A stretch of 64,000 nt of DNA, taken from assembly GCF_028641065.1 (NCBI RefSeq), contig NW_026575759.1, positions 186,001-250,000 of the forward strand, given 5' to 3'. The translations under genes were made by a program, and so were the position numbers. This stretch comes from Leucoraja erinacea (lineage: Eukaryota). The notes beneath the pieces are model-generated. The model saw nothing but the letters and a program-made list of their open reading frames with translations, searched no databases and had not been told where the DNA came from. This document shows, one piece after another, positions 2,110 through 60,117 of this stretch; the stretch's first letter is position 1; every line of letters begins with the position of its first letter.

Positions 2110-3095
2110 GATTTAGACAATAGACAATAGGTGCAGGAGGAGGCCATTCGACCCTTCGAACCAGCACCGCCATTCAATGTGATCATGGCTGATCATCCCC
2201 AATCAGTACCCCGTTCCTGCCCTCTCCCCATATCCCCTGACTCTGCTATCTTTAAGAGCCCTATCTAGCTACCTCTTGAAAGTATCCAGAGAACCGCCCT
2301 CTAAGGCAGAGAATTCCACAGACTCACAACTCTCTGTGAGAAAAAGTGTTTCCTCATCTCTGTTCTAAATGGCTCATCCCTTATTCTTAAACTGTGTGGC
2401 CCCTGGTTCTGGACTCCCCCAACGTCGGGAACATGTTTCCTGCCTCTAGCGTGTCCAAACCCTTAATAATCTTATATGTTTCAATAAGATGCCCTCTCAT
2501 CCTTCTAATCTCCAGAGAATACAAGCCCAGCCGCTCCATTCTCTCAGCATATGATAGTCCTGCCTTCCCGGGAATTAACCTTGTAAACCTGTGCTGCACT
2601 CCCTCAATAGCAAGAATGTCCTTCCTCAAATTAGGGGACCAAAACGGCATACAAATATACCAATGTCTCCAAGGCTGGGATTGGTTGTATGTGGTGCTAA
2701 ACCTTATAGAATTTGGCTTGTACACACTAGAATTTAGAAGATTGAGAGGGGATCTTATAGAAATTTACAAAATTCTTAAGGGGTTGGACAGGCTAGATGC
2801 AGGAAAATTATTCCCGATGTTGGGGAAGTCCAGAACTAGGGGTCACAGTTTAAGGATAAGAGGGAAGTCTTTTAGGACCGAGATGAGAAAATCATTTTTT
2901 ACACAGAGAGTGGTGAATCTGTGGAATTCTCTGCCACAGAAGGTAGTTGAGGCCAGTTCATTGGCTATATTTAAGAGGGAGTTGTGGCCCTTGTGGCTAA
3001 ATGTGGCCCTTGTGTACGGAGAGAAGGCAGGGATGGGATACTGAGTTGGATGATCAGCCGAATGGCCTACTCCTGCACCTATTTTCTATGTTTCT
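2110..3095. mobile_element. Two CR1 3' fragments in opposite orientation (about 2110-2645 minus; about 2710-3095 plus)
   Basis: CR1 peptides in ORFs 2387..2725(-) and 2394..3044(+). Confidence 0.85.
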
Positions 3096-5509: not shown

Positions 5510-5563
5510 GTTTGCGGCCAAACTAATCGCTGGAGTGCTGGACTTCAAGTGTAAGCTCGACAG
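5510..5563 (+). CDS. CRAT: CRAT-like coding exon (54 nt): [17 protein letters not shown]
   Basis: tctctacag|G acceptor and AG|gtaagt donor; matches CRAT 'FAAKLIEGVLDFKVMID'. Not in the ORF track. Confidence 0.9.
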
Positions 5564-8500: not shown

Positions 8501-11500
8501 ATTTTGGGATGCACAAAATCTTCGCGCGCCACCTGCATAACGCGCAAATGACGCCCAAGTGGGACAGGCCCTTGGGCCCACCGAGTCCGTACCGACCAGC
8601 GATCGCCCCCGTACAACAGCACTACCCTACACACACTACGGACAACTTCCAATTTGCAGAGGGGCATTTAACCTCCAGACCCGCACGTCTTTGGAGTGTG
8701 GGGGGAAACCGGAGCGGCCGGAGAAATTCCACACGGTTCATGGGGAGAACGTGCAAACTCTGCACAGACAGCACCCGTAGTTGGGATCGAAACGCCGTGC
8801 CTGCCCCTAATGTACTCGTTCTACAGCGTCTCGTGATTATTCCCGGACGTTGACGTAGCCATTTTGTTCTCGTTTTGTTTTCCTCTTTAGTCAGTCGCTT
8901 GCAACTGAGTACAGTCGGGCGAACCCCCTCTGCATGGATCTGTACGCCAAGATCCTGTCCTCCTGTCGTATCCCTGGGCCCAAACACGACACCCTGATCA
9001 ATTACGGGTCCACCAGGAGTCCACCGACGCACGTCACCGTAGTCCGCAACTTCCAGGTGAAACCTCAACTTCCAGATAAGCTGTGAATTACATAGACTTG
9101 GCATTGGTTCTGTCTTTAATGCAGCGTGTGTGTGTATGTGTGTGTGTGCGTGTGTGTGTGTGTGTTTAAGTATGCATGTATATGAGAGTGTGTAAGTATG
9201 CATGTGTGTGTGTTTAAGTATGCATGTGTGTATGCATGTGTAAGTATGCATGTATATATGCGTGTGTATGAATATACGTGTGTGTAAATATGTGTGTGTT
9301 TGTGTGTGTGTAATTATGCATGTATATATGTGTGTGTGTAAGTGCATGGGTGTGTGCATGTATGCACGTGTATGTGTATATATTTGTGCGTGTTTACAAG
9401 TATGCATGTATATGTGTGTGCAAGTATGTGTGTGTGTGTGTGTGTGCGCATGTATGCACGTATATCAAGTTCAAGTTCACATTTATTGTCACAGGCAATA
9501 GACAATAGACAATGGGTGCAGGAGTAGGCCATTTGGTCCTTCGAGCCAGCACGGCCATTCAATGTGATCATAGCTGATCAAATCACTACCCCGTTCCTGC
9601 CTTCTGCCCATATTCCCTGACTCCGCTATCTAGCTCTCTCTTGAAAGTATCCAGAGAACCGGCCTCCACCGCCCTCTGAGGCAGAGAATTCCACAGACTC
9701 ACAACTCACTGTGAGAAAAAGTGTTTCCTCATCTCTGTTCTAAATGGCTTACCTCTTACTCATAAACTGTGGCCCCTGGTTCTGGACTCCCGCAACATTG
9801 GGAACATGTTTCCTGCCTCTAGCATGTCCAAACCCTTAATAATCCGCAATAAAATCCCTTCAATTCCTTCTAAACTCCAGAGTATACAAGCCCCGCCGCT
9901 CCATTCTCTCAGCATATGACAGTCCCGCCATCCCAGGAATTAACCTGGTGAACCTCAATAGCAATAATATCCCTCAATAGCAATAATATCCCTCAATAGC
10001 AAGAATATCCTTCCTCAAATTAGTGGACCAAATCTGTACACAATACTCCAGGTATGGTCTCACTAGGGCCCTGTACAACTGCAGAAGAACCTCTTTGCTC
10101 CTATACTCAACTCCTCTTGTTATAAAGGCCAACATGTCATTGGCTTTCTTCACTGCCTTCTGCACCTGCATGCTTACTTTCAGTGACTGATGAACAAGGA
10201 CCCCCAGATCCCATTGTACTTCCCCTTTTCCCAATTTGACACAATTTAGAAAATAACCTGCCTTCCTGTTTTTGCTCCCAAAGTGGATAACCTCACATTT
10301 ATCCACAGCCACCGACATAATCAAAGACGAGGCTCACTTCCACGCGATCCCAGCACACTAACACTATCCTACACGTACTAGGGACAATTTCACACGTACA
10401 CCAAGTCAATTAACTTACAAACCTGTACGTCTTTGGAATGTGGGAGGAAACCGAAGATCTCGGAGAAAACCCACGGGGGCATGGGGGAGAAAGTACAGAC
10501 CGTACAGACACATACTCTGGAGTTTAGAAGGATGAGAGGGGATTTTATTGAAACATATAAGATTATTAAGGATTTGGACACGCTAGAGGCAGGAAACATG
10601 TTCCCGATATTGGGGGAGTCCAGAACCAGGGGCCACACAGTTTAAGAATAAGGGATGAGCCATTTAGTACAGAGATGAGGAAACACTTTTTCTCACAGAG
10701 AGTTGTGAGTCTGTGGAATTCTCTGCCTCAGAGGGCGGTGGAGGCCGGTTCTCTGGATACTTTCAAGAGAGAGTTAGATGGGGCTCTTAAAGATAGCGGA
10801 GTCAGGGGATATGGGGAGAAGGCAGGAACGAGGTACTGGTTGTTGATGATCAGCCATGATCACATTGAATGGCGGTGCTGGCTCGAAGGGCCGAATGGCC
10901 TCCTCCTGCACCTATCGTCTATTGTCTTTTGTCTTTTGGAGTGTGGGAGGAAACCGAAGATCTCGGAGGCAACCCACGCAGTCACGGGGAGAACGTACAA
11001 ACTCCGTATAGACAAGCACCCGTAGTCAGGATCGAACCCGGGTCTCTGGCGCTGTGAGGCAGCAACTCTACCGCAACGCCACTGGGCCGCCTTAGCTCCT
11101 GTTCAGTTGCGATGGCTCGCGAATTTGCTGACCTTGTTCGAACACTCCTTTCTTTCTTTTAAAATCTTTTTATTAGTTTTTTTCCAAAAAACAAAAACAA
11201 AACCAAAAGAATAATGATCAACATAACAATGATATTGATACATAGGGATCAGGGAAGGAACTGCAGTTGCTGGAAGTGAGTTTACAAAATTGTCAGAAAC
11301 TCAGTGTCCAGCTGTATATGGACAATGAAATTCTTTTCAGGCCAAAACCCTTGTAATCAGCATTTCAGGAGGAGGAGCCCGAATAGGAGACAGCTCAAGG
11401 GTTAAAGGGGATGAGTCCAAGTGCTATCAAAATGTACAGAGGAGGTTGAAACTATCTCCGGAGACCTCTTCAAAGTAAATTGAAGTGAGTTTAAATGTCC

Positions 11501-14500
11501 CTGTGTAGGACAAGAAATTCTTATTTGTAATCAGAAAAAAATCTAAATATGAGTCCAGTGTCAAAATACACATTGAATATAGACCTCCCGGTCTCTATGT
11601 AAATATAGTTAAATGTTTAAAAGAAAACTTATATGTGGAAAAAAAAGAAAAAAGATAAAAGGAAATAAAAAAGGAAAAAAAAGAGAAAAAAGTAAGTAAG
11701 TAAAACTAGAAAAAAAGCAAAACGAATCTGAGCTGAGAATTTCAACAATCTAAGTCCCTGTTTGTCGTCAAGTCCGTTCCACCATATAAAGGTAAAATCA
11801 TTTTTATAATTCTGACATTCCTGCGCTCGCTTATACTTGCAGTTCTTCCACCTGGATGTGTACAACAGCGACGGCTCGCCTCTGACTGTGGACCAGATTC
11901 ACATGCAGCTGCAGCGCATCCGGAATTTCTCCTGGAAGACGGACAAGGAGCCGTTGGGAGTTCTGACGAGCGATCACCGCAACACCTGGGGCCAGGCCTA
12001 CAACACCCTCATGAAAGGTAGAACGAACTCGGAACGATCGCTAGTGCCGAACGAATGGACTAGTTTAGTTTAGGTGAGGGATACAATAGAAACAAGCCCC
12101 TTCACCCCACTGAGTCCGCGCCGCCCAGCGATCTCCCCCCCCCCCCTCACTAACACTGCCCGACACAGAGTCCGGGAACAATTTGCAATTTTACAAAAGC
12201 AAATTAGACTACAAGCCTGCACGTCTTTGGAGTGTGGGAGGAAACCGGAGCACCAGGAGAAAACCCACTCAGGTCCGGGGGTGAACAATACTCCAGGCGT
12301 GGTCTCACTAGGGCCCTGTACAACTGCAGAAGGACCTCTTTGCTCCTATACTCAACTCCTTGTGTTGTGGGGGCCAACATGCCATTCGCTTTCTTCACTG
12401 CCTGCTGTCCCTGCATGCTTGCATTCATTGACTGATGATCAAGGCCCCCCAGATCCCATTGTACTTCCCCCTTTCCCAACTATCTCCAGGACTGGCTGCA
12501 GTTCCCAGGTCGCCTGCGAGCCCCGGGACTAGCTGTAGCGCCCAGATCACGTAAACAATTTTTTTGTTTAAATGCCTGCGGGCCGGATGATTTCGGGCTA
12601 CGGGCCGGATCCAGCCCACGGGCGTAGGTTTCCGACCCCTGCCCTAGACTTTATTTCCTTCCTCATGTATCTATACAATGTGGACGGCTCGATCGTAATC
12701 ATGTATTCGTAATCATGAGTATTGTAGAATATTCTTTATTTGCGAAACATTCCTCAAACTACACGGTACTTGGTGAGGATTTAACGCTTTAAGCTCCTGT
12801 CGACGTGAGGAGCACTAGATGCTGAGCGTACTCAATAGCCCACGAACAAACCCCATGTCGCGACCAATGACGAGGGTTCTGAATAGCCAGCTTCACCACT
12901 AGGTGTCGCGACACATTGTCTTTCCACAGACGGGATAGCACGCAACAAAAAAGCTTTTCCCTGTACCTCGGTACACGTGACAACGAACTGTAAACTCTGA
13001 AAACTTTCCATTGCCGTCTCCCACAGACAAGCTGAACAGAGAGTCGGTCAGGGCCATTCAGCAGAGCATCTTTACCGTGTGCCTGGACTCGCCCGTCCTG
13101 AAAATCTCGGAGGAGAAGTACACGAGCCGGATGGCGGCCCAGATGCTACACGGAGGTGGAAGTTACTCCAACAGCGGCAACCGCTGGTTTGATAAAGCGC
13201 TGCAGGTACAAGTGATGGGACAACAAAGAGGTCCTTCTGCAGTTGTACAGGGTCCTAGTGAGACCACACCTGGAGTGTTGTGTGCAGTTTTGGTCCCCTC
13301 ATTTGAGGAAGGACATTCTTGCTATTGAGGGAGTGCAGCGTAGGTTCACCAGGTTAATTCCCGGGATGGCGGGTCTGTCGTATGCTGAGAGAATGGAGCG
13401 GCTGGGCTTGTACACTCTGGAGTTTAGAAGGATTTAGCACGGAGACCAGGAAACATTTTTTCACAGAGAGATTCAGATTCAGATTCAGATTCAATTTTAA
13501 TTGTCATTGTCAGTGTACAGTACAGAGACAACGAAATGCATTTAGCATCTACCTTGAAGAGCGACATAGCAAACGATTTGAATAAAAAAATAAATAATAA
13601 GTGTCCGGGTCCGTGGGGGGGGCGGTGATTGGCAGTCACCGAGGTACGTTGTTTAGTAGAGAGTTGTGAGTCTGTGGAATTCTCTGCCTCAGAGGGTGGT
13701 GGAGGCCGGTTCTCTGGATACTTTCAAGAAAGAGCTAGATAGGGCTCTTAAAGATAGCGTAGTCGGGGGATATGGGGAGAAGGCAAGAACAGGGTACTGA
13801 TTGGGGATGATCAGCCCTGATCACATTGAATTGGTTTGAAGGGCCTAATGACCTTACTCCTGCACCTATTGCCTATTATCTATTGACAGTGTGTGCTGGC
13901 CATTGTCGTAGAAGTCACAGTCATACTGCGTGGAAACAGGCCCTTCCGCCCAACTTGCCCACGTTGACCAACATGTCCCACCTGCACCCGTCCCACCTGC
14001 CAGCGTTAGGCCCAAATCCCTCCAAACGTTTTCTATCCCTTTTTCCATGCTGTAGGACTCTGGAGAGATGTGTATGAGATGAATCTGAAGAAGGTTCCCG
14101 ACCTTGGGTTGCCAACTTGCTCACTCCCAAATAAGGGACAAAAGGTCCCTTGATTATTCTGGCAAATTAGATTACTGTCTAAATATCAGATTATTATCTA
14201 AATGGCGTCAATTTGGGAAAAGGGGAAGTACAACGGGATCTGTGGGGTCCTTGTTCATCAGTCTATGAAAGTAAGCATGCAGGTACATCAGGCAGTGAAG
14301 AAAACCAATGGGCATGTTGGCCTTTATAACAAGAGGATTCAAATATAGGAGCAAAGAGGTCCTTCTGCAGTTGTACAGAGCCCTAGTGAAACCACACCTG
14401 GAGTATTGTATACAGTTTTGTCCCCTAATTTGAGGAAGGACATTCTTGCTATTGAGGGAGTGCAGCGTAGGTTCACCAGGTTAATTCCCGGGATGGCGGG

Positions 14501-17500
14501 ACTGTCATATGCTGAGAGAATGGAGCGGCTGGGCTTGTATACTCTGGAGTCTAGAAGGATGAGAGGGGATCTTATTGAAACATATAAGATTGCTAAGGGT
14601 TTGAACACGCTGGAGGCAGGAAACAGGAATGATTTTAACAGTAAAAATCTTGTGAAAGTTGGCGTTTTTAAAGGTTTAATCGCGAATAATGTGAAATGTA
14701 GGATGAAATCTTCAGTGAAGCTGATAACTGCTAGCCGGGCCATTGTGACGTCATCAGTGAAAGCTGGTCGTTTTAATTTCAAAGCCTTTTGATGTTTTTA
14801 AACTTCTTACTTATAATCAGTAATAAGTCGAGAAATAAAGCATAAAATGTTCAATGAAGGTGATCTCAGCCTTGAGGGGAAAATTGTCAATCAGAATATG
14901 TAAAAATGTAATGATTACCACGTGATGTTTTTGCGAAGATGTAGACAACCACATATATACACACTTATACTCACGTACAAGATCAGACTTTTAATAAGTA
15001 AATGATGATTAGGGCTTGTTGATCTTCTAAATGATGGACCTTAAGTTTTCTGATTGTATTGCAGTTCATTGTTGGTGAGGATGGATCCTGTGGTGTAATC
15101 TACGAACAATCTTGTGGTGAGGGGCCGCCCATTGTTGCCATTTTGGACCACGTTCTAGATTATTGGTAAGATCTTCTTATAGAGTCCGCACACAAGATTA
15201 GACGTTGTTCAGCCAGGCACTTCTCAGCATCTGCTGCAATGAGAGGTGATCTTATTGAAACATATAAGACTATTAAGGGTTTGGACACGCTAGAGACAGG
15301 AAACGTGTTCCCGATGTTGGGAGAGTCCAGAACCAGGGGCCACACACAGTTTAAGAATAAGGGGAAAGTCATTTAGAACGGAGAGGAGGAAACATTTTTT
15401 CACCCAGAGAGTTGTGAGTCTGTGGAATTCTCTGCCTCAGAGGGCGGTGGAGGCCGGTTGTCTGGATACTTTCAAGTGACAGAGTTCTTGAAGATAGCAG
15501 AGTTGGGAGATATGGGGAGAAGGAAGGAACGGGGTACTGATTGGGGATGATCAGCCATGATCACATTGAATGGTGGTGCTGGCTCGAAGGGCCGAATGGC
15601 CTCTACTCCTGCACCTATTGGCTACCACTGCTCGGACGCATTGGGGCTGAAGGGCCTGTTTCCGCGCTGTATCTCTAAACTAAATTGAAGTCGCATGTTC
15701 CATCTTGCATGCCCCGGATATAATTGTAACTCTTTCAGAAAAATGGTGCACTACAGTGAAGTTTAAATATGGTTTATCAAGTATCATTCCTGATTCAACA
15801 TCTTTCCTTTGTACTTTGCCTTGTGTAGCAAGGACCCGGATACAGTTCGAGCTCCAATGATTCCTCTGCCGTTACCCAAGAAACTGTATTTCTACATCAC
15901 TCCAGAGATAAAGTGGGATATTGAGCATGCAAAACAGAATCTGGACATGTGAGTATCATTGTGGCTGCTTGTGTCAATCAGTTCGACTAGATACTGTCTC
16001 TAACAAAGGCCCAGTTTTTAACTCCTAAAGTATGGCAGTCGTAGGGTTGCCAACTGTCCTGTATTAGCCGGGACATCCCGTATATTGGGCTAAATTGGTT
16101 TCGCCCGTGTCCCGTATTTGACCGCGACTACTCGGGTCAAGGGGTCGGACCCCGCCTCACCCGTCCTGACGTAGTGCAGCCCGTGGAGAGCAGCAGTGGC
16201 AGCGCCTCGCCCATGGCCCCGTCGGTTGGCAGCCCGGACTGCTGTATGAACCTTCGGACCTTCGCTGACCGCCAACACCACCACCTCCCCTCCTTTTCAT
16301 GGCCGATCGTCGGTTCATGAGTTGGACGGGGCGCCGGACTTTGCGTGCGATGTCGCGCGGCCCCCGGGCCAAAACTCCTCAGCTGGCCCCGCCGGCTGGG
16401 CTTTGCGTGCAGTCCAGCACTCCGGGCCAACTCATCATTCTCCCAGCCACGGCCCAGTCGGTCAACGAAATGCCGTCTGGGGAATTTGTCCCATATTTTG
16501 ACCTTTTGTCCCGTATTTGGGAGTGAGGAAGTTGGCGAACCCTAATGCGTCATTCAGCAGAATATGACATCATCATAGAATATAGAAAGGTATAGCACAG
16601 GAACAGGCCCTTCAGCCCACATTGTCTGTACCGAACATGATGCCAAGGGGTGGCACAGTGGCGCAACTGTAGAATCGCAGCCTCACAGCGGCAGAGACCC
16701 GGGTTCATTCGAGACTATAGTTGCTGTCTGTGGGGAGTTTGTGTGTTCTCCCCGTGACCTGCGTGGTTTTCTCCGGTTTCCTCCCACACTCTAAAGGCGT
16801 GCAGGTGTGTAGGGTAATTGGCCCCGGGTATAATTGTTCAATTGTCTCGAGTATGTAGGTTAATGCTAGTGTACAGGGTGAGCACTAGTTGGTGGGGACT
16901 CGGTGGGCCGAAGGGCCTGTTTCCATGCTGTATCTCTTTTTTTTTTTTTAATATTTAATTTTATTAGAAGTACAATCATATGGCACCAAAGTGCCTAATA
17001 TATATTTTACATAGAAACATAGAAATTAGGTGCAGGAGTAGGCCATTCGGCCCTTCGAGCCTGCACCGCCATTCAATATGATCATGGCTGATCATCCAAC
17101 TCAGTATCCCGTACCTGACTTCTCTCCATACCCCCTGATCCCCTTAGCCACAAGGGCCACATCTAACTCCCTCTTAAATATAGCCAATGAACTGGCCTCA
17201 ACTACCCTCTGTGGCTGAGAGTTCCAGAGATTCACCACTCTCTGTGTGAAAAAAGTTCGTCTCATCTCGGTTTTAAAGGATTTCCCCCTTATCTTTAAGC
17301 TGTGACCCCTTGTCCTGGACTTCCCCAACATCGGGAACAATCTTCCTGCATCTAGCCTGTCCAACCCCTTAAGAATTTTGTAAGTTTCTATAAGATCCCC
17401 TCTCAATCTTCTAAATTGTAGAGAGTATAAACCAAGTCTATCCAGTCTTTCTTCATAAGACAGTCCTGACATCCCAGGAATCAGTCTGGTGAACCGTCTC

Positions 17501-18675
17501 TGCACTCCCTCTATGGCAATAATGTCCTTCCTCAGATTTGGTTATATTAAAGAAAGATTAGAATAAGAAAAATAAATTAGATAGTAAAGGATAGAAAAGC
17601 GTGAGATATATAGTGTGTGAAGAAAAAGAAGAAAGACGAATGAGTGAAGAAAGTTGAGAAAAAGAAAATAGGAAAAAGAGAATAAGACATTTAAAAAAAA
17701 ATAAATAAATAAAATTAAATAAAAAAAAAAAAGGGGTAAGGAGATCATTGTTTATAATCTTAACCAACCCTCATCCAGTCGTGAAACAGTTATTTTTTAC
17801 AATTGTGTTGCATCATATGATTCCAAAAAGATGACAAATGGAGACCAACTCGTTATGAATTGGTCTGATTTATCCATTAGGAGGAATCGCATTTCCTCAA
17901 GATGAGCGGTGTCCAACATACTTGCAATCCACATTTTAAGCGTTGGTATTGATGTATTTTTCCAAAATTTAAGTATTAATTTTTTTGCTATTATTAACCC
18001 ATAGTTAAAGAATAAAATTTGAGGTGTGTTCAATTTATTCCCATCTTCCATTACTCCAAATATAATCATTTCCGTATTAGGTTCCATTCTACTCTTGAAT
18101 AATTTTGTAAATATTTTGAAAATATCGCTCCAAAATCTATAAAGTTTTATGCGGGAAACTAAGGAGTGCGTATCTCTAAACTCTAAAATTGAAACGATGT
18201 CTCTGTTCCAGTTTAGTTAACGACCTGGACATCAGCTGCTTCACGTACAGAAACTTTGGCAAAGACTTCCCCAAAAAACATGGCATAAGCCCGGACTCGT
18301 TTGTCCAGATGGCTCTTCAGTTGGCTTACTTCAGGTATGTACTCTGGGAAGGGCTGCCAACTCCCTCACTCCCAAATAAGGGACAAAAGGTCAAAATACG
18401 GGACAAATTCCCCCACGGCAATTCGTTGACCGACTGGTCCGTGACTGGGTGAATGATGAGTTGGCCCCGGGTGCTGGACTGTACACAAAGCCCAGCCGGC
18501 TGAGCCAGCTGAGGAGTTTTGGCCCGGGGGCCGCCCGCACAGTCCGGCGCCCCGTCTAACTCACAAACCGATGACCGGCCGTGAGAAGGAGGGGGGTGGC
18601 GGTGGTGTCGGCGGTCAGCGAAGGTCCTGAGGGTCGGCTGCTGCAGCTGGCCGGCTGCTGCTGCTGCTGCTGCTG

Positions 18676-18708
<33 letters not shown>

Positions 18709-18762
18709 GACGGCTGCTGCTGCCTGCTGCGGGCGAGGCGCTGCTGCTGCTGCTGCCTGCTG

Positions 18763-18813
<51 letters not shown>

Positions 18814-21800
18814 GGCTGCTGCTGCTGCTGCTGCTGCTGCACTCCATGGGCTGCACTATGTCGGGGTGGGTGAGGCAGGGCCGGATGCGGCGCTCCGACC
18901 CGACAGTCCCCTCGACCCGAGTAGCAGCGGTCAAATACGGGACAAGGGCGGTCAACCCAAATTAGCCCAGAATACAGGATGTCCTGGCTCTGTTTTACAA
19001 TGATTGTCCCCTCAGCTTGTAACATTCCTTTTATTATCCAGACTGCTCAAACTTCCGAGGTAGAGAATTCCAAGGTTTCGCCACCCTCTGTGAAAATAAA
19101 GTTCTACGCAGCACTGTTTTAAAATGAGTGGTCCTAATATTGTTGTAGATCAAACAGTATTCCTGATTTGATCCATGTCGGGTCTTGCTGCTGGTGACCA
19201 GATCCGTAAACCATGTCAGGTCTCCTACACTACTGCCAGCTCGTGCATGCGGGCAGCCATGTGGAGTTTTAGATTTAACTTGCGATTCAGAGTCTACAGT
19301 ACTCATCTCAATGGTCTCTGTATGTATATATTCTTACTATTGAGGGAGTGCAGCGTGGGTTCACAAGGTTAATTCCCAGAATGGCGGGACTGTCATATGC
19401 TGAGAGAATGGAGAAGCTGGGCTTATACACTCTGGAGTTTAGAAGGGTGAGAGGGGATCTTATTGAAACATATAAGATTATTATGGGTTTGGACACGCTA
19501 GAGGCAGGAAACATGTTCCCGATGTTGTGGGAGTCCAGAACCAGGGGCTACACAGTTTAAGAATAAGGGGTAAGCCATTTAGAACGGAGATGAGGACACT
19601 TTTTTTCACACAGGGAGTTGTGAGTCTGTGGAATTCTCTGCCTCAGAGGGCAGTGGAGGCCAGTTCTATGGACACTTTCAAGAGAGAGCTAGATAGGGCT
19701 CTTAAAGATAGCGGAGTCAGGGGATATGGGGAGAAGGCAGGAACAGAGTACTGATTGGGGATGATCAGCCATGATCACATTGAATGGCGATGCTGGCTCG
19801 AAGGGCCGAATGACCTATTCATGCACCTAGTGTCTATTATCTATTGTGTACAAATTAAAGTACTTTTGAGTTGGAGTGAAGCTGGGATCACTGCCTTATG
19901 GCCTTTTTATAGTATGTTCCCCTATTATAATCTTTTCTCTTTGCGACCACTTTTAGAATGTACAAGGAGCTGTGTTCTGCTTGCGAGACTGTTTCACTGA
20001 GGAACTTTCATTTGGGGCGCACAGATGTGGTACGATCCTCGTCCACGGATTCCTTGGAGTTTGTGGAAAGCATGGACAATGAAAAAATTGAGGTAATTCA
20101 TCCTTGGAAGTTCACAAAAAATATAGCATCTCTCCAACAACTAACTTTACGAGGATGTTGCCAGGACTCGAGGGTGTGAGCTACAGGGAGAGGTTGAGCA
20201 GGCTGGGTCTCTATTCCTTGGAGCGCAGGAGGATGAGGGGTGATCTTATAGAGGTGGATAAAATCATGAGAGGAATAGATCGTGTAGACGCACACAGTCT
20301 CTTGCCCAGAGTTGGGGAATCGAGGACCAGAGGACATGCAGTACCTTTCAGGTGAAGGGCGAAAGATTTAATAGGAATCTGAGGGGTGACTTTTTCCATA
20401 CAAAGGGTGATGGATGTGTGGAACAAGCTGCCAGAGGAGGTAGTTGAGACTGGGACTATCCCAAAGTTTAAGAAACGATTATAAAGATACATGGATAGGA
20501 CGGGGAGACACAAAATGCTGGAGTAACTCAGCGGGACAGGCAGCATCTCTGGAGAGAAGGAATGGGTGACGTTTCGGGTCGAGATCCTTCTTGGGATAAG
20601 ACAGGTGTGGAGGGATATGGGGCAAACACAGGCGGGTGGGACCAGTGTAGATGGGGCATGTTGGCCACCATTGGTAGTCGGGCCAAATGAGCCTGTTTCC
20701 ACGCTGAATGACTCGATGACTAACACTGGCAGCAATTGAGGTGTTGCCTCACAGCGCCAGAAACCGGGTTCGATCCTGACCTCGGGTGCTGTCTGTGCAG
20801 AGTTTGCACGTTTTCCCCGTGACCGGGTGGGTTTTCTCCAGGTGCTCCGGTTTCCTCCCACATCCCAAAGACAGAAAGGATGGGTTGCACTTGAACCCGA
20901 GAGGGACCAATATCCTAGCGGGGAAATTTGCAAAGGCAGCTGGGGAGACTTTAAAATAGAATAACCATATAACAATTACAGGTTGGGGCGAGGGACTCAA
21001 ATAGCGAAAGGTAGTAGAAAGGTAGTAGACAGAATGGGAGGCAGGAAGCAGAAATGGGAAGCACTCGGACACAAGAGGAGAAAGGAAAAAAAGGAAATAA
21101 ACAGAGAATAAGAGACGGGGGTTTTCTTAAATGTGCATATTTTAATGCTAGGAGCATTGTAAGAAAAGTGGATGAGCTTAGAGTCTGGATAGACACCTGG
21201 AAGTATGATGTTGTGGCGATCAGTGAAACGTGGTTGCAGGAGGGCTGTGATTGGAAACTAAATATTCCAGGATTTCGTTGCTTCAGGTGTGATAGAATTG
21301 GAGGGGCAAGAGGTGGAGGTGTTGCATTGCTAGTCAGGGAAGATATTACAGCAGTGCTTTGGCAGGATAGATTGGAGGGCTCATCTAGGGAGGCTATTTG
21401 GGTGGAATTGAGAAGTGGGAAAGGTGTAGCAACACTTATAGGGGTGTATTATAGACCGCCAAACGGGGAACGAGAATTGGAAGAGCAAATATGTAAGGAG
21501 ATAGCAGAGATTAGTAGTAAGCACAAGGTAGTGATTGTGGGAGATTTCAACTTTCCACACATAGACTGGGAAACACATTCTGTAAATGGGCTGGATGGGT
21601 TGGAGTTTGTAAAATGTGTGCAGGATAGTTTTTTGCAGCAATACATAGAGGTACCTACTAGAGGAGGGGCAGTGCTGGACCTCCTGTTAGGAAATGAGAC
21701 TGGACAGGTGGCGGAGGTATGCGTTGGGGAGCACTTCGGGTCCAGTGATCACAATACCATTAGTTTCAATATAATTATGGAGAGGGTCAGAACTGGACCT

Positions 21801-24800
21801 GGGGTTGAGATTTTTGATTGGAGAAAGGCTAACTTTGATGCGATGCGAGATGATTTAAAAGGAGTGAACTGGGACATTTTGTTTTATGGGAAAGATGTAG
21901 AAGAGAAATGGAGGACATTTAAAGGGGAAATTTTAAGAGTACAGAATCTTTATGTTCCTGTTCGGTTGAAAGGAAACAGTAAAAATTGGAAAGAGCCCTG
22001 GTTTTCAAGGGAAATTGGACATCTTGTTCGGAAAAAGAGGGAGATCTACAATAATTATAGGCAGCATGAAGTAAATGAGGTGCTTGAGGAGTATAAGGAA
22101 TGTAAAAAGAATCTTAAGAAAGAAATTAGAAAAGCTAAAAGAAGATATGAGGTTGCTTTGGCAAGTAAGGTGAAAGTCAATCCAAAGGGTTTCTACAGCT
22201 ATATTAATAGCAAAAGGATAAGGAGGGATAAAATTGGTCCATTGGAGAGACAGAGTGGACAGCTATCTGCAGAGCCAAAAGAGATGGGGGAGATAGTGAA
22301 CAATTTTTTTTCTTCGGTATTCACCAAAGAGAAGGATATTGAATTATGTGAGGTAAGGGAAACTAGTAGAGTAGCTATGGATACTATGAGGTTCAAAGTA
22401 AAAGAAGTACTGACACTTTTGAAAAATATAAAAGTGGATAAGTCTCCAGGTCCTGACAGGATATTCCCTAGGACATTAAGGGAAGTTAGTGTAGAAATAG
22501 CCGGGGCTATGACAGAAATATTTCAAATGTCATTAGAAACGGGAATAGTCCCCGAGGATTGGCGTACTGCGCATGTTGTTCCATTGTTTAAAAAGGGTTC
22601 TAAGAGTAAACCTAGCAATTATAGACCTGTTAGTTTGACTTCAGTGGTGGGCAAATTAATGGAAAAGATACTTAGAGATAATATATATAAGCATCTAGAT
22701 AAACAGGGTCTGATTAGGAACAGTCAACATGGATTTGTGCCTGGAAGGTCATGTTTGACTAATCTTCTTGAATTTTTTGAAGAGGTTACTAGGGAAATTG
22801 ACGAGGGTAAAGCAGTGGATGTTGTCTATATGGACTTTAGTAAGGCCTTTGACAAGGTTCCTCATGGAAGGTTGGTTAAGAAGGTTCAACTGTTGGGTAT
22901 AAATGCAGGAATAGCAAGATGGATTCAACAGTGGCTGAATGGGAGAAGCCAGAGGGTAATGGTGGATGGCTGTTTATCGGGTTGGAGGCAGGTGACTAGT
23001 GGGGTGCCTCAGGGATCTGTGTTGGGTCCTTTGTTGTTTGTCATGTACATCAATGATCTGGATGAAGGTGTGGTAAATTGGATTAGTAAGTATGCAGATG
23101 ATACCAAGATAGGGGGTGTTGTGGATAATGAAGAGGATTTCCAAAGTCTACAGAGTGATTTAGGCCATTTGGAAAAATGGGCTGAAAGATGGCAGATGGA
23201 GTTTAATGCTGATAAATGTGAGGTGCTACACCTTGGCAGGACAAATCAAAATAGGACGTACATGGTAAATGGTAGGGAATTGAAGAATACAGTTGAACAG
23301 AGGGATCTGGGTATAACCGTGCATAGTTCCTTGAAGGTGGAATCTCATATAGATAGGGTGGTAAAGAAAGCTTTTGATATGCTAGCCTTTATAAATCAGA
23401 GCATTGAGTATAGAAGCTGGGATGTAATGTTAAAATTGTACAAGGCATTGGTGAGACCAAATCTGGAGTATGGTGTACAATTTTGGTCGCCCAATTATAG
23501 GAAGGATGTCAACAAAATAGAGAGAGTACAGAGGAGATTTACTAGAATGTTGCCTGGGTTTCAACAACTAAGTAACAGAGATAGGTTGATAAGTTAGGTC
23601 TTTATTCTCTGGAGCGCAGAAGGTTAAGGGGGGACCTGATAGAGGTCTTTAAAATGATGAGAGGGATAGACAGAGTTGATGTGGACAAGCTTTTCCCTTT
23701 GAGAATAGGGAAGATTCAAACAAGAGGACATGACTTCAGAATTAAGGGACAGAAGCTTAGGGGTAATATGAGGGGGAACTTCTTTACGCAGAGAGTGGTG
23801 GCGGTGTGGAATGAGCTCCCAGTGGAAGTGGTGGAGGCAGGTTCATTGGTATCATTTAAAAATAAATTGGATAGGCATATGGATGAGAAGGGAATGGAGG
23901 GTTATGGTGTGAGTGCAGGCAGGTGGGACTAAGGGGAAAAGAAAATTTGTTCGGCATGGACTTGTGGGGCCGAGATGGCCTGTTTCCGTGCTGTAATTGT
24001 TATATGGTTATATGGTTATATGTGGGTTTTAATTGTATAATTTAAATTTCCCCTCGTGAGTAAGATGCGAAACTGGCATAATGTAGAACTAGTGTGAATT
24101 GATGGACAGCGTGGACTTGATGGGCCGAAGGGCCTGTTTCCATGCTGTGTCTCTAAACTGAACTAAAGAGGCCAGCATTTAGTTGGTAGAACAGGCCCAA
24201 CAGAGGATGTACTTCATACGGCAGCTGAGGAAACACAATCTGCCACAGGCAATGATGGTCCAATTCTACACGGCCATTGTAGAGTCTGTCCTCACCTTCT
24301 CCATCATGGTCTGGTTTGGCTCAGCCACCAAGCACGACACCCGGAGGCTGCAGCGAATCGTCCGATCAGCAGAGAAGGTTATTGGCTGCACCCTTCCCTC
24401 CATTGATGAACTGTACACTGCAAGGGCCAGGAAGCGAGCAGGCAAGATCATCTCTGACCCCTCTCACCCTGGCCACAAACTCTTTGAATCACTTCCCTCT
24501 GGAAGGCGACTCCGGACTGTCAAAGCTGCCACAGCCACACATAAAAGCAGCTTTTTTCCACTAGTTGTAGCTCTACTCAGTAACCAAAAACCTGTAGCCT
24601 CCTTTTGCTCTGGTATTTTATTTAATTCACATGTTTAATCGATAATGTTTTATTATTATTAATGTTTAATGTGTCATTCCTAACTCACTGTATGTCATGT
24701 TGTCACTTGCGGGCAGAGCACCAAGGCAAATTCCTTGGATGTGAATACTTGGCCAATAAACTTATTCAATCGTTCATAAACGTATTCATTCATCCCAAAG

Positions 24801-27800
24801 ACATGTGGGTTCGTAGGTCAATTGTCTGATGTAAATTTCCCCTGGTGTGTAGGATGCGAAACTGAGATATCGCAGAACTAGTGTGAAAGGGCGACTGATG
24901 GTATGCATGGACTCGATGGGCCGAAGGGCCTGCTTCGATGCTGTATCTGTAAACTAAACTAAAGAGGCCAGCATTACTGCTCTGATCAGCTTTTACATTC
25001 GGCAACGAGACATTTAGTTATAAAACAAAAAATAGCAAATATATTTTTTCCCAACAGTATTGCGTTTCACTATAATTAACTGTGTGTCCTTCCACCCCCC
25101 TCACCCTCTCAGGCAAACCAGAAGGTTGCGGCTTTGAGGAGAGCTATTGACTGCCACAGCGCATACACCGACATGGTAAGGAAAGATCAGGGTGAGCTGC
25201 ACAAAGTGCTGGAGTAACACAGCTGATCCGGCACTGTCTCTACAATAGGTTCACAAGGTTAAATCCCGGGATGGCGGGACTGTCATATGCTGAGAGAATG
25301 GAGCGGCTGGGCTTGTACACTCTGGGGTTTAGAAAGATGAGACATATAAGATTATTAAGGGTTTGGACACGCTAGAGGCAGCAAACGTGTTCCCGATGTT
25401 GGGGGAGTCCAGAACCAGGGGAATGTGAGGAGGGAAAGATTTAATGTGAACCTGTGCATAATTAAGAATAAGGGGTAAGCCATTTAGAACGGAGATGAGA
25501 AAACACTTTTTCACACAGAGAGTTGTGAGTCTGTGGAATTCTCAGCCGGTTCTCTGGATACCTTCAAGAGAGAGCTTGATAGGGCTCTTAAAGATAACGG
25601 GGTGAGGAGATATGGGGAGAAGGCAGGAACGGGGTACTGATTGGGGATGATCAGCCGTGATCACACTGAATGGCTGTGCTGAGTCAAAGGGCCGAATGGC
25701 CTCCTCCTGCACCTATTGTCTATTGTCTATTGTCAAAATCTTGTATAAACCTGCATCTGCAGCTCTCACATAAATGTGTTTTGTTCTGCTCACAGGCGCT
25801 GAAAGGCTTGGCAATTGACAGGCACCTGTTGGGACTGAAGCTGCAGGCTATCGAGGAAGGGCTGAGCGTGCCGGAAATCTTCATGGACACATCCTTCGCT
25901 GTGGCCACTCACTGGAGACTCTCGACGGGACAGGTCAAGTCATGTCAACTTTATTTGTCACTAAAGGGCCTGTCCCACTTGGCAATTTTGTTCGGCGACT
26001 GCCGGCATCGTATCAGTGTCGCCGAAAGATTTTGAACATTTTCAAAATCCAGCGGCGACAAAAAAAATGTTGCGACACTTGAAATAACACCTGATACGCC
26101 AGTCAATGATGCCGGCAGTCGCCGGAAAAATCACCAAGTCGGACAGGCCCTTTGCACATGCAAGATGTACAGTGAAATGAAACAATGAGATGTACAATGC
26201 CTACGGTGCTGGCTCGAAGGGCCGAATGGCCTACTCCTGCACCTGCACCTATTGTCTATAGATTGTGCAAAACAACAGAACAGAACCAGAATTAAAAAAA
26301 AGACACAACAGTATTCACACCCTGGTGAGATCAGAGTTTACAGTCCTGACGGCCTGTGGCAAGAAACTCCGTCTCATCCTCTCTGTTTGACAGCGGAGGC
26401 GTTTGCCTGACCGTAGCAGCTGGAACAGTCCGTTGCTGGGGGGGTAGGGGTCCCCCATAATGTTGCTGGCTTTGGATCTGCACCTCCTGATGTATAGGTC
26501 GTGCAATGGAGGGGGAGTGTAGTTCCCATGGTGTGTTCGGCCGAACGCACTACTCTCTGCAGAACCTTCCTGTCCTGGGCAGAGCTGTTGCCAAACCAGA
26601 TCGAGATGTTTCCAGTCAGGATACTTTCTACGGCACCAGAGTAGAAGGATTGAAGGATCATAGAAACATAGAAACATAGAAATTAGGTGCAGGAGTAGGC
26701 CATTCGGCCCTTCGGGCCTGCACCGCCATTCAATATGATCATGGCTGATCATCCAACTCAGTATCCCGTACCAGCCTTCTCTCCATACCCCTTGATCCCC
26801 TTGGCCACAAGGGCCACATCTACTCCCTCTTAAATATAGCAATGAACTGGCCTCCACTACCCTCCGTGGCAGAGAGTTCCAGAGATTCACCACTCTCTGT
26901 GTGAAAAAAGTTCTTCTCATCTCGGTTTTAAAGGTTTTTCCCCCTTAGCTCCCCTTGTCCTGGACTTCCCCACATCGGGAACAATCTTCCTGCATCTAGC
27001 CTGTCCAACCCCTTAAGAAATTTTGTAAGTTTTCTATAAGATCCCCTCTCAATCTCCTAAATTCTAGAGAGTATAAACATCCTCAGAGAAACTCCTGGTT
27101 CTGGACTCCCCCAACATTGGGAATATGTTTCCTGCCTCTAGCGTGTCCAAACCCTTAATTTGGTCCATATCCCTCCAAACCTCTCACTTGCATCTGGAGT
27201 TTTTCATTGCAATTTGGTAAAAGAAATGGTGCTGAAATCACGTGCGATACCTAATTATATGTTGACGGTCCTTCTGCAGTTGTACAGGGCCTTAGTGAGA
27301 CCACACCTGGAGTATTGTGTGCAGTTTTGTTCGCCTAATTTGAGGAAGGACATTCTTGCTATTGAGGGTGTGCAGTGTAGGTTCACCAGGTTCATTCCCG
27401 GGATGGTGGGACTGTCATATGCAGAGAGAATGGAATGGCTGGGCTTGTACACTCTGGAGTTTAGAAGGATGAGAGGGAATCTTATTGAAACATGTAAGAT
27501 TATTAAGGGTTTGGACACGCTGGAGGCAGGAAACATGTTCCTGATGTTGGGTGAGTCCAGAACCAGGGGCCACACAGTTTAAGAATAAGGGGTAAGCCAT
27601 TTGGAACGGAGATGAGGAAACACATTTTCACACAGAGAGTTGTGAGCCTGTGGAATTCTCTGCCTTAGATGGCGGTGGAGGCCTGTTCTCTGGATGCTTT
27701 CAAGAGAGAGCTACATAGGGCTCTTAAAGATAATGGAGTCGGGGGATATGGGGTGAAGGCAGGAACGGGGTACTGATTGGGGATGATCAGCCGTGATCAC

Positions 27801-28116
27801 ATTGAATGGCGGTGTTGGCTCAAAGGGCCGAATGGCCTACTCCTGCACCTAGTGTCTATTGAATGGGTGTTCTTAACCTGAGACTCTTTCCCTTTCACAG
27901 GTCTCTGCCAGAGCTGACTGTGTGATGTGCTTCGGCCCGATGGAGCCAGACGGATATGGGGTTTGGTACAACCCTTTGGAGGACCACATCAATTTCTCCG
28001 TCTCTGCCTTCAACTGCTGTGAGGAGACGAATGCGGAATGGTTCTCCAAGTCGCTGGAGACGGCCCTCTCCGACCTGCACAGCTTGGTCTTGGGAGCTAC
28101 CGGTCAGACCTCTTAG
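5510..28116 (+). CDS. CRAT: Carnitine O-acetyltransferase-like gene (CRAT paralog), 5'-partial; 11 coding exons: 5510-5563, 8891-9056, 11843-12017, 13027-13205, 15065-15165, 15829-15948, 18212-18334, 19957-20092, 25113-25175, 25796-25933, 27901-28116
   Basis: All exons have AG/GT boundaries and splice into one open frame (1471 nt, about 489 aa, TAG at 28114-28116). The translation is colinear with vertebrate CRAT ([79 protein letters not shown]). The N-terminal exons were not found in the window. Probably a paralog rather than the canonical ortholog. Confidence 0.93.
5848..6720 (-). mobile_element. Non-autonomous retroelement of about 870 bp with an L2-type 3' tail and GC-rich 5' part, inserted into a CR1
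   Basis: Splits CR1 exactly at cttgcta|ttgaggg. The minus-strand 3' end reads TGTAAAGCACTTTG...TGCTATATAAATAAA plus short repeats. No recognisable protein. Confidence 0.65.
7095..7836 (-). mobile_element. CR1 3' fragment inserted antisense into another CR1 3' end
   Basis: ORFs 7434..7847(-) and 7174..7422(-); the + strand CR1 resumes at about 7837. Confidence 0.88.
8366..8572. mobile_element. MITE with GCCTGTCCCACTT-type TIRs (PIF/Harbinger-like)
   Basis: agagcctgtcccacttgggtgtcattt ... aaatgacgcccaagtgggacaggccct. Confidence 0.75.
8891..9056 (+). CDS. CRAT: CRAT-like coding exon (166 nt): [55 protein letters not shown]
   Basis: tcctctttag| acceptor and CAG|gtgaaa donor; PLCM..Y..ILSSCR.PGPK motif. 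Confidence 0.92.
9125..9465. repeat. Degenerate (TG)n/(TATG)n microsatellite
   Basis: Directly visible. Confidence 0.95.
9497..10305 (-). mobile_element. CR1 3' fragment
   Basis: ORF 9974..10324(-) DKCEVIHFG...[12 protein letters not shown]; (CTATTGT)n tail. Confidence 0.88.
11843..12017 (+). CDS. CRAT: CRAT-like coding exon (175 nt): [15 protein letters not shown]...GQAYNTLMK
   Basis: cttgcag| acceptor and G|gtagaa donor; within ORF 11837..12073. Confidence 0.92.
13027..13205 (+). CDS. CRAT: CRAT-like coding exon (179 nt): [20 protein letters not shown]...[12 protein letters not shown]
   Basis: cccacag| acceptor and CAG|gtacaa donor; contains the NRWFDK carnitine acyltransferase signature. 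Confidence 0.94.
15065..15165 (+). CDS. CRAT: CRAT-like coding exon (101 nt): [33 protein letters not shown] (catalytic-His exon, His replaced by Gln)
   Basis: attgcag| acceptor and TG|gtaaga donor; aligns to 'FIVAEDGSCGLVYEHAAAEGPPIV'. Not in the ORF track. Confidence 0.92.
15829..15948 (+). CDS. CRAT: CRAT-like coding exon (120 nt): [39 protein letters not shown]
   Basis: ttgtgtag| acceptor and AT|gtgagt donor; PLP.PKKL.F.ITPEIK motif. Confidence 0.92.
16042..16544. mobile_element. Non-autonomous DNA transposon with TAGGGTTGCCAAC-type TIRs (hAT-like)
   Basis: tagggttgccaact ... agttggcgaacccta with subterminal TGTCCCGTATT repeats; no TSD is obvious. Confidence 0.7.
16938..18169 (-). mobile_element. 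L1-like LINE 3' end with poly(A) and 8-bp TSD, containing a nested CR1 (about 17010-17540)
   Basis: ORF 17797..18087(-) [11 protein letters not shown]...P.LKMW...W.PF; T-run at 16938; GTATCTCT duplicated at 16930-16937 and 18170-18177. Confidence 0.8.
18212..18334 (+). CDS. CRAT: CRAT-like coding exon (123 nt): [40 protein letters not shown]
   Basis: ctgttccag| acceptor and AG|gtatgt donor; FGKDFPK...[12 protein letters not shown] CoA-binding segment. Confidence 0.93.
18350..18990. mobile_element. Second, inverted copy of the 16042-16544 element, carrying a CTG expansion
   Basis: Reverse-complement similarity along its length; the shared pseudo-peptide [20 protein letters not shown] appears on opposite strands. 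Confidence 0.8.
18654..18840 (+). repeat. Interrupted (CTG)n trinucleotide repeat, about 60 units
   Basis: Directly visible. Confidence 0.97.
19957..20092 (+). CDS. CRAT: CRAT-like coding exon (136 nt): [45 protein letters not shown]
   Basis: cttttag| acceptor and GAG|gtaatt donor; SLR.FHLGRTD..RS motif. Confidence 0.92.
20872..24022 (+). mobile_element. Near-intact 5'-truncated CR1 LINE: ORF1 C-terminus, ORF2 (APE endonuclease + RT), 3' UTR and (ATATGGTT)n tail
   Basis: The ORF1 esterase-like end [17 protein letters not shown]...LK* is at about 20875-20959, followed by ORF2 and a microsatellite tail at 24001-24022. The element is inserted into a SINE. Confidence 0.92.
21054..23932 (+). CDS. 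CR1 ORF2 (endonuclease-reverse transcriptase) with one 1-nt frameshift near 23588
   Basis: EN motifs FNARS, ISETW, YRPP, GDFN and SDH; RT motifs [30 protein letters not shown] and YADD. The 847-aa ORF 21054..23597 is continued by the frame of ORF 23654..23932. Confidence 0.9.
24190..24790 (+). mobile_element. Rex1/Babar-like LINE 3' fragment
   Basis: [13 protein letters not shown]...[18 protein letters not shown]...DPSHPGH.LF..LPSGRR.R. Confidence 0.75.
25113..25175 (+). CDS. CRAT: CRAT-like coding exon (63 nt): [21 protein letters not shown]
   Basis: ccctctcag| acceptor and ATG|gtaagg donor; aligns to 'HQKVELLRKAVQAHRGYTDR'. Confidence 0.88.
25796..25933 (+). CDS. CRAT: CRAT-like coding exon (138 nt): [46 protein letters not shown]
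   Basis: ctcacag| acceptor and CAG|gtcaag donor; DRHLLGLK motif; the STS motif reads STG. Confidence 0.93.
25965..26151. mobile_element. MITE with AGGGCCTGTCCCACTT TIRs (PIF/Harbinger-like)
   Basis: agggcctgtcccacttgg ... ccaagtcggacaggccct with a near-palindromic interior. Confidence 0.78.
26280..27860. mobile_element. Cluster: Rex1/Babar-like fragment (-, about 26280-26660), CR1 (-, about 26660-27160) and CR1 (+, about 27268-27860)
   Basis: ORFs 26374..26661(-), 26315..26920(-) and 27160..27582(+). Confidence 0.78.
27901..28116 (+). CDS. CRAT: CRAT-like last coding exon: [25 protein letters not shown]...LGATGQTS*
   Basis: cctttcacag| acceptor; FGP..PDGYG.YNP motif; TAG stop at 28114-28116. 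Confidence 0.93.
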   Translation, partial: VSARADCVMCFGPMEPDGYGVWYNPLEDHINFSVSAFNCCEETNAEWFSKSLETALSDLHSLVLGATGQTS

Positions 28117-59018: not shown

Positions 59019-60117
59019 GCAAGGATAGTTATATGTTCAATTAGCGCGCACGGAATGATGTTGATAATGAAGGGCCAGACCTACTGAAGCAACTCAATGG
59101 GTCAGGCAGCATCTCTGGAGAAAATGGATAGGTGACGTTTCAGGTCAGGAAGAAGGTTCTCAACACGAAACGTCACCAAGTCAATAGACAATAGACAACA
59201 GGTGCTGGAGTAGGCCATTTGGCCCTTCGAGCCAGCACCACCATTCAATGTGATCATGGCTGATCATCCACAATCAGTTCCTGCCTTCTCCCCATATCCC
59301 CTGACTCTGCTATTTTTAAGAGCCCTATCTAGCTCTCTCTTGAAAGCATCCAGAGAACCGGCCTCCACCGCCCTCTGAGGCAGAGAATTCCACAGACTCA
59401 CCACTTCTCTGTGAGAAAAAGTGTTTCCTCATCTCAGTTCTAAATAGCTTACCCCTTATTTTTAAGCTGTGGCCCCTGGTTCTGGACTCCCCCCAACATC
59501 GGGAGTCAAGTCAAGTCAACTTTATTTGTCACAAACACATACAAGACGTACAGTGAAATGAAAGTGGCAATGTTTGCAGAATTGTGCAAAACAACAGAAC
59601 CGAACCAGTATTTACATTTTGTTTAAAAAGACACTCCAGTAAATGAGTCCCTGGTGAGATAGGAATTTACAGTCCAGGTGGCCTGTGGGAAGAAACTCTG
59701 CCTCATCCTCTCTGTTTGACAGCTGAAGCGCTTGCCTGACCGTAGCAGTCCTTTGCAGGGAGAGTAGGAGTCCTCCATAATGTTGTTGGCTCTGTATCTG
59801 CTCCTCCTGATGTATAGTTCCTGCAATGGAGGGGGAGTGTAGTTCCCATGGTGCATTCGGCCGAACGCACTACTCTCTACTGAGCCTTCCTGGCCTGGGC
59901 ATAGCTGTTCCCAAACCAGAGAGACTCTGAATTTCCTCAGCTGCCTGAGGTGGTAAAGGCGCTGCCTTGCCTTTCTCACCAGTGCGGCAGTGTGTGTTGT
60001 CCATGTCATGTGGGTTGTCCTCTGTGATGTGGACTCCCAGGTATTTAAAGCAGCTCGCCCTATCAACAGTAGTCCCATTTAACCCCAGTGGCGTGTATGT
60101 CCCCTGTTGTTGTGAGG

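Follow-up and report, generated by a model that had tools for sequence, protein, structure and literature searches.

The gene cratb of the little skate (Leucoraja erinacea) lies on the + strand of a 64,000-nucleotide stretch of contig NW_026575759.1 (RefSeq assembly GCF_028641065.1, positions 186,001 to 250,000), which is referred to throughout as the window and supplies the coordinates used below. This gene, already annotated in the skate, goes back to an ancient duplication, in vertebrates, of the gene for carnitine acetyltransferase, CRAT. Judged from its active-site residues, the product very probably does something other than the textbook CRAT reaction, and it is probably a mitochondrial pseudoenzyme, maintained by selection, that would not carry out His-based carnitine acetyl transfer and would still bind coenzyme A (CoA) or a short acyl-CoA. 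Given that the gene is known and named, the new part is the conserved carnitine acyltransferase branch without catalytic residues to which it belongs.

The three exons of the active site align without gaps to mouse and human CrAT (phmmer against Protein Data Bank, PDB, chains), and direct reading together with these alignments identified three replaced codons:

15107-15109, + strand: CAA, Gln at CRAT position 343, which is His in 94/94 canonical CRATs
19982-19984, + strand: TGC, Cys at CRAT position 452, canonically Tyr and Cys in 146/158 cratb proteins
25928-25930, + strand: GGA, Gly at CRAT position 554, canonically the oxyanion Ser and Gly in 158/158 cratb proteins

An earlier note, made from the letters of the window alone, had placed these codons at the same positions, and the eight residues that it gave as retained (K419, K423, D430, E347, E453, T465, R518 and M564) are all present. 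Within the aligned exons YEQSCGEG stands for YEHAAAEG, the SACETVS region for CATYESASLR and LSTGQ for LSTSQ. With residue numbers taken as the index in chain 1ndb plus 29, the skate changes relative to CrAT are H343Q, Y452C, S454T and S554G, together with Val569 to Met, while Q555, F566, W102 and Y107 are also kept. All four CoA contacts (Lys419, Lys423, Asp430 and Gln555) are present, and two of the four carnitine carboxylate ligands are kept (Thr465 and Arg518), the other two, Tyr452 and Ser454, being altered. Two hallmarks of an active carnitine O-acetyltransferase (EC 2.3.1.7) are absent from skate cratb: His343 in Y-E-H-x3-E-G, and Ser554 in S-T-S, which reads S-T-G. His343 is given as the catalytic residue of carnitine acetyltransferase (PMC11852590).

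Comparison of these sites in an alignment of 252 full-length proteins, 94 canonical CRAT and 158 cratb, indicates which of the changes are held. The 94 canonical proteins are invariant at 343 (H), 347 (E), 419 (K), 423 (K), 430 (D), 452 (Y), 453 (E), 454 (S), 465 (T), 518 (R), 552-555 (STSQ) and 564 (M). Among the 158 cratb proteins, position 343 is Gln in 133, His in 13, Ala in 9 and Pro in 2, and position 452 is Cys in 146, Ala in 5, Thr in 3, Ser in 3 and Phe in 1; position 554 is Gly without exception. The kept residues are retained by 158 (K423, Q555), 157 (T465), 156 (K419, M564) and 142 (R518) of the 158, and a single sequence, gapped at that position, lacks W102. On a 58-row tree parsimony requires six changes at 343, six at 452 and one at 554, and none at K423, Q555 or T465. 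Selection appears indifferent to the residue at 343, and Gly554 and the CoA-side lysines appear firmly held. Since 343 varies among Gln, His, Ala and Pro within the clade, Gln itself is not what selection keeps.

The variation at these sites follows particular lineages. The bearers of His343 among the named cratb proteins are all Cypriniformes or one mormyrid (P0273, P0275-P0277, P0281-P0286, P0347, P0376, P0169 and P0426); they keep the cratb state at Gly554, Cys452, Asp453 and Arg552, and parsimony indicates that their His343 is secondary. Every cypriniform in the lists has His at this position. Ala at 343 is found in salamanders, Cyclopterus and Mastacembelus, and Pro in Prochilodus and Epinephelus. 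Zebrafish, which is not in the lists obtained, probably has His343 as a cypriniform and may be an atypical model for the Cratb of this clade. At position 452 squamates have Ala or Thr, turtles and gar have Ser, and alligator and lungfish have Gly and Asn, respectively. In teleosts there are further changes on the carnitine side (S454I, S552R) and at CoA contacts (E453D, D430N), of which D430N is common to teleosts, bichir, gar and bowfin; the skate and other non-teleost cratb proteins retain D430, E453 and S552. Seven columns are invariant within each of the two clades and differ between them (V114L, G121A, H207R, Q242K, R382Y, S554G and S594C), and looser thresholds of conservation give 27 columns that differ in this way, a pattern that points to new constraints as well as to loss. 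The cratb proteins of turtles, alligator and snakes are more eroded (P0181, P0269, P0407-P0410, P0420, P0423 and P0415), with K419 replaced by Q or R in turtles and alligator, R518 by G in alligator and by C in a snake, and a long turtle branch (0.33), and in sauropsids the constraint on cratb may be relaxing.

Relatives were collected by searching a representative library with the last exon and by word-indexed searches, which gave proteins named "carnitine O-acetyltransferase b" or "-like". They include the elasmobranchs Stegostoma, Chiloscyllium, Mobula, Narcine, Rhinoraja, Pristis and Amblyraja and, beyond these, coelacanth, lungfish, a caecilian, salamanders, squamates, turtles, alligator, bichir, paddlefish, gar, bowfin and more than 100 teleosts. 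Birds, mammals and frogs contribute no cratb to the lists obtained by these searches, which is not proof of absence, and the single bat match is a canonical CRAT. A 58-protein tree (LG+C20, IQ-TREE in quick mode) sets the 31 cratb rows apart from all others by a branch whose Shimodaira-Hasegawa-like approximate likelihood ratio test (SH-aLRT) support is 100, and the cratb stem measures 0.45 changes per site; the rows of canonical vertebrate CRAT, 21 in number, are sister to them (support 91), with the invertebrate proteins outside. Skate cratb groups with that of Rhinoraja (99), and the canonical Rhinoraja and Chiloscyllium CRATs fall in the other clade. Given that the order within both the cratb and the CRAT clade follows the species tree, the duplication of CRAT from which cratb descends is older than the split between cartilaginous and bony vertebrates. 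By parsimony, the loss of His343, Tyr452 and Ser554 is placed on the cratb stem. The replacements of His343 and of STS by STG, which the earlier note proposed to look for in orthologs, are found throughout this old gnathostome clade, both in the tree and in the site table. The same note had taken the gene for a CRAT paralog; it is one, though not an unnoticed one, being annotated as cratb.

Despite the loss of these residues, the gene is under strong purifying selection, and decay is excluded. In matched pairs the identity of cratb and CRAT is 84.2 vs 87.7% (skate-shark), 84.8 vs 89.9% (gar-bowfin) and 94.3 vs 91.7% (anole-Sceloporus), so that cratb evolves only slightly faster than CRAT; 177 of 626 columns are invariant among 30 diverse cratb proteins, and the open reading frame (ORF) is intact in every lineage sampled. 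Contigs of three related organisms (B, C and D) were compared with the window over 11800-16000, a stretch of four exons that includes the one with the His position. The exon differences listed are 7 synonymous and 0 nonsynonymous (124.7 synonymous and 448.3 nonsynonymous sites), and under neutrality all seven would be synonymous with a probability of about 2e-5. Exon divergence is 0.39% in organism B and 0.87% in organism C, against about 2.1% and 4.7% in unique intron flanks, so that the exons are about five times less diverged than the neighbouring introns; in this comparison only the best-supported differences are listed, and the intron figures include repeat edges. The tree and the rates, together with the 7:0 ratio of synonymous to nonsynonymous differences, ruled out a young, lineage-specific, decaying duplicate.

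The gene is spliced into mRNA. Logan contigs of 2.1-2.3 kb encode the full 631 amino acids (P0152, P0390-P0395), and the skate protein itself (P0386) is carried on 25 contigs from NCBI and Logan. Given that the genomic span exceeds 22 kb, contigs of such a length must be spliced cDNA, and at the three active-site positions they encode Gln, Cys and Gly. The AlphaFold2 (AF2) model of P0386, built on a 51-sequence alignment, has a mean predicted local distance difference test (pLDDT) score of 84.9 and a predicted template modelling (pTM) score of 0.86, and its top Foldseek match is mouse CrAT (1ndb_A; template modelling (TM) scores 0.91/0.96, root-mean-square deviation (rmsd) 1.3 A over 583 columns, 60% identity), so that the two-domain CrAT fold is predicted to be kept. 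The cellular address appears to differ. Skate cratb ends in GQTS and every cratb protein is without the (A/S)KL carried by nearly all listed canonical CRATs, which indicates that the C-terminal peroxisomal signal was lost; zebrafish Cratb is reported to be without the type 1 peroxisomal targeting signal (PTS1) (PMC8919083). The first 45 residues of P0386, encoded outside the window, contain 6 Arg or Lys and no Asp or Glu.

These observations suggest the following mechanism. In the absence of His343 and the oxyanion Ser554, canonical acetyl transfer between CoA and carnitine should not be possible, and given that the gene is maintained all the same, selection would be maintaining another property. 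This property would most likely be the binding of CoA or a short-chain acyl-CoA in that half of the tunnel which takes up CoA and is retained, with the Met564 gate, kept in cratb, limiting the acyl pocket to short chains. The protein would be imported into mitochondria by means of its basic N-terminal extension and, as a ligand binder there, could serve as a buffer, sensor or regulator of the acetyl-CoA/CoA pool; the sensor, scaffold or regulator of the earlier note is likewise a putative role. The earlier note had argued for a selected loss of chemistry, not decay or a base error, and the clade-wide changes, the constraint, the kept K419, K423, Q555 and M564 and the fold model support it in this.

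A number of points weigh against a mitochondrial pseudoenzyme. The loss of function is deduced from residues only, and the His343 of Cypriniformes and the mormyrid raises the possibility that some members might have partial chemistry. Given the teleost changes D430N and E453D, the kept CoA pocket rests mainly on K419, K423 and Q555, and Gly554, Cys452 and the seven clade-specific columns point to a new constraint, which may be a new reaction and not binding alone. The basic N-terminal extension is compatible with a mitochondrial presequence, an address drawn from composition alone. Finally, a polyA RNA run of organism E, of which about 6% was read, gave a depth of 0.5-1.9 on three exons and zero on 15829-15948, with no exon-exon joints at the listing threshold. 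Almost all of these reads have the first mate on the minus strand, the direction expected for + strand RNA in most stranded libraries, which by itself is weak support for transcription. Expression is thus indicated mainly by the transcript-sized Logan contigs.

It may be ventured, with clearly less confidence than is placed in the pseudoenzyme, that cratb is more than a dead enzyme, namely a mitochondrial protein that underwent neofunctionalisation and has been kept since before cartilaginous and bony vertebrates diverged, in which Gly554, Cys452 and the CoA/short-acyl pocket would serve a new activity, and which would be present in the non-mammalian jawed vertebrates and lost in mammals, birds and possibly frogs. 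Candidates for such an activity are an acetyl-CoA/CoA sensor or regulator like CPT1C, or a new acyl-CoA-dependent reaction.

The main rival to the pseudoenzyme is that cratb is an enzyme of a different kind, which uses the residues acquired on the stem branch for another acceptor, for hydrolysis of acyl-CoA or for acyl transfer through Cys452. The fixation of Gly554 (158/158), the prevalence of Cys452 (146/158) and the 7 invariant-different and 27 conserved-different columns are in keeping with this, and a long stem (0.45) followed by slow evolution is the pattern expected of neofunctionalisation; furthermore, Arg552 at the carnitine trimethylammonium site of teleosts, together with Ile454, suggests a carnitine site that was rebuilt, not let go. 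Three points nevertheless make such an enzyme rather unlikely: there is no conserved general base, given the drift of 343 among Gln, His, Ala and Pro; Cys452 is replaced in squamates, turtles, gar, alligator and lungfish and so cannot be a universal nucleophile; and no alternative catalytic residue was identified.

It is improbable that cratb is, as its database name implies, a carnitine O-acetyltransferase of weak yet physiologically sufficient activity. The skate protein does keep T465, R518, F566, E347, W102 and Y107 on the carnitine side and M564 in the acyl pocket, the modelled fold is unchanged, and all sources name the protein carnitine O-acetyltransferase b or -like. However, these names are automatic and homology-based, and the general base and oxyanion serine are gone and Tyr452 and Ser454 changed, all of which 94/94 canonical CRATs keep. 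Replacement of the catalytic His is known to abolish activity in CPT2, CPT1, COT and ChAT.

A duplicate on its way to becoming a pseudogene under relaxed selection, to which the loss of several catalytic residues, the more eroded sauropsid copies (K419Q/R; R518G/C in alligator and snake) and the lack of cratb in the lists for birds, mammals and frogs might point, is very improbable and already contradicted by the intact ORF in all sampled lineages, a rate near that of CRAT, the 7:0 synonymous differences, the exon/intron divergence and the full-length transcripts. An assembly or base-calling error as the source of the CAA codon is scarcely credible and was ruled out, with nothing found in its favour, by the identical protein on the 25 NCBI and Logan contigs, by near-identical Gln proteins in six further Logan contig sets and in Amblyraja, Pristis, Rhinoraja, Mobula, Narcine and Stegostoma, and by the contigs of organisms B, C and D, which cover 15107-15109 with no difference listed there.

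A mitochondrial pseudoenzyme would have consequences for annotation. Fish transcriptome papers count cratb as a peroxisomal or beta-oxidation enzyme (PMC11463132), and in the open-access literature the gene appears only as a differentially expressed "peroxisome pathway" gene or as one missing PTS1; no open-access paper was found on the missing catalytic residues of cratb, or joining carnitine acetyltransferase with pseudoenzyme. The residues indicate that the protein cannot perform the named reaction, and the peroxisomal signal is absent; the pathway annotation of most non-mammalian vertebrates would, if this holds, be wrong at the cratb node. The gene is also a strongly conserved member of a well-studied metabolic family, and for experiments on it the clade itself offers natural variants at position 343 (Gln, His, Ala and Pro) and at position 452 (Cys, Ala, Thr and Ser).

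The part of the gene inside the window comprises 11 exons on the + strand (5510-28116) that encode residues 143-631 (489 amino acids), all bordered by AG/GT, in one frame and with a single terminal stop. The earlier note had the 11 cleanly splicing exons right, and its span of 15065-25933, which holds only 6 of the 11, has to be widened; the exon with the His position, which it ended at 15168, has its border at 15165. Exons were located by means of stop-free stretches and tblastn with relatives, their borders were refined by the requirement for AG and GT, and all 489 residues of the resulting model are identical to residues 143-631 of P0386 (XP_055521752.1, "carnitine O-acetyltransferase b [Leucoraja erinacea]"). 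Searches used the exons singly and full-length work used P0386, exons being joined only for protein comparison and the classification of codons. When tested singly, 8 of 9 exons passed the cut-off of 22.3 of PF00755 (choline/carnitine O-acyltransferase family) with 23-51 bits, so that a chance match is not an issue, and full-length cratb orthologs carry the same domain. A search of the window for exons of residues 1-142 found none (best E 0.54); these lie upstream of it. The exons are:

5510-5563, + strand: first exon in the window, for about residues 143-160 (tblastn of P0152 and P0155; AG/GT borders; belongs to the 100% identical model)
8891-9056, + strand: exon (tblastn, splice borders; PF00755 E 8.9e-09)
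11843-12017, + strand: exon (PF00755 E 9.6e-13; sole listed difference in related organisms synonymous)
13027-13205, + strand: exon (tblastn, splice borders; PF00755 E 2.6e-11)
15065-15165, + strand: exon with the catalytic-base position, YEQSCGEG (covered by contigs of organisms B, C and D; only two listed differences, both synonymous)
15829-15948, + strand: exon (tblastn, splice borders; without a Pfam match of its own)
18212-18334, + strand: exon with FGKDFPK...SPD, K419, K423 and D430 retained (PF00755 E 9.7e-14)
19957-20092, + strand: exon with SACETVS...GRTD, Y452C and S454T changed, E453 and T465 kept (phmmer against PDB, splice borders, Pfam)
25113-25175, + strand: exon (tblastn, splice borders)
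25796-25933, + strand: exon with IDRH, R518 kept, and LSTGQ (phmmer against PDB, splice borders, Pfam)
27901-28116, + strand: last exon, with the TAG stop, M564 and F566 kept and the C-terminus ...GQTS without (A/S)KL (splice borders, Pfam)

The introns contain repeats. Between the exons at 19957-20092 and 25113-25175, on the strand of the gene, lies an uninterrupted long interspersed nuclear element (LINE) ORF of 859 amino acids (21018-23594, +) with Exo_endo_phos (E 9e-16) and RVT_1 (E 1e-34) domains, and this element may be young or active; the intron that follows the exon at 18212-18334 holds a (GCT)n microsatellite (18637-18840; about 68 units, 85% matches). Both strands carry fragments of one LINE 3' region across the window (for example at 1-699, 2391-3041, 13216-13434, 14349-14789, 15170-15700 and 19279-19751) and drew read depths in the millions, which limits what reads show in introns. 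Two database entries met among the relatives are themselves irregular: a teleost cratb cluster of 154 members (P0304) bears the source name 'Catalase [Epinephelus coioides]', which looks like a naming error, and the top representative match (P0001; 575 amino acids, with a canonical-type active site, YEH and TYESAS) has a C-terminal exon-like segment repeated about five times and probably results from a gene model that spans tandem copies, or else from faulty assembly.

Downstream of cratb are exons of a butyrophilin-like gene (36619-37023, 38313-38699 and 48813-49661, +), with matches to Ig V-set (E 1e-12), the butyrophilin-type Ig-C domain PF22705 (E 6.5e-21) and SPRY/B30.2 (E 1.9e-18), and an ORF at 58680-59084 resembles a TRIM coiled coil without a Pfam match. 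Human CRAT maps to 9q34, one of the regions regarded as paralogous to the major histocompatibility complex (MHC). Taken together, the linkage of cratb to a butyrophilin-like gene and the place of CRAT in an MHC paralogous region would fit an origin of cratb by whole-genome duplication.

Of the known systems, CRAT/CrAT itself (EC 2.3.1.7; 1ndb, 1nm8) is like cratb in its PF00755 domain, an identity of about 58-60% and an exon structure of the same type, and cratb keeps its K419, K423, Q555, T465, R518, M564, F566, E347 and W102 in a model that deviates by an rmsd of 1.3 A. It differs in that skate cratb has Gln for His343, Gly for Ser554, Cys for Tyr452, Thr for Ser454 and Met for Val569 and is without AKL/SKL, and in that cratb forms a separate clade on a long stem, with no mammal, bird or frog member in the lists obtained. 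Within the vertebrate cratb orthogroup (named carnitine O-acetyltransferase b by ZFIN and NCBI) the skate product shares the x-T-G-Q motif, Cys452, Gln343 and the absence of PTS1, and nothing sets it apart; teleosts have N, D and R at 430, 453 and 552. Choline acetyltransferase (ChAT; 2fy2, 1q6x) has the same fold (TM 0.88-0.89) and exemplifies, within the family, a carnitine-carboxylate site remodelled to take a different acceptor; however, it keeps the catalytic His and is about 40% identical, whereas cratb groups with CRAT on the tree. CPT1C, the brain paralog of carnitine palmitoyltransferase 1, is a malonyl-CoA sensor with little or no transferase activity. It belongs to the same superfamily, ligand binding is thought to be its function, and it is a precedent for reading cratb as a sensor and not an enzyme; nevertheless, the catalytic His is present in CPT1C, a membrane protein of mammals only, whereas cratb is without the His, would be soluble with a presequence, and is found outside mammals.

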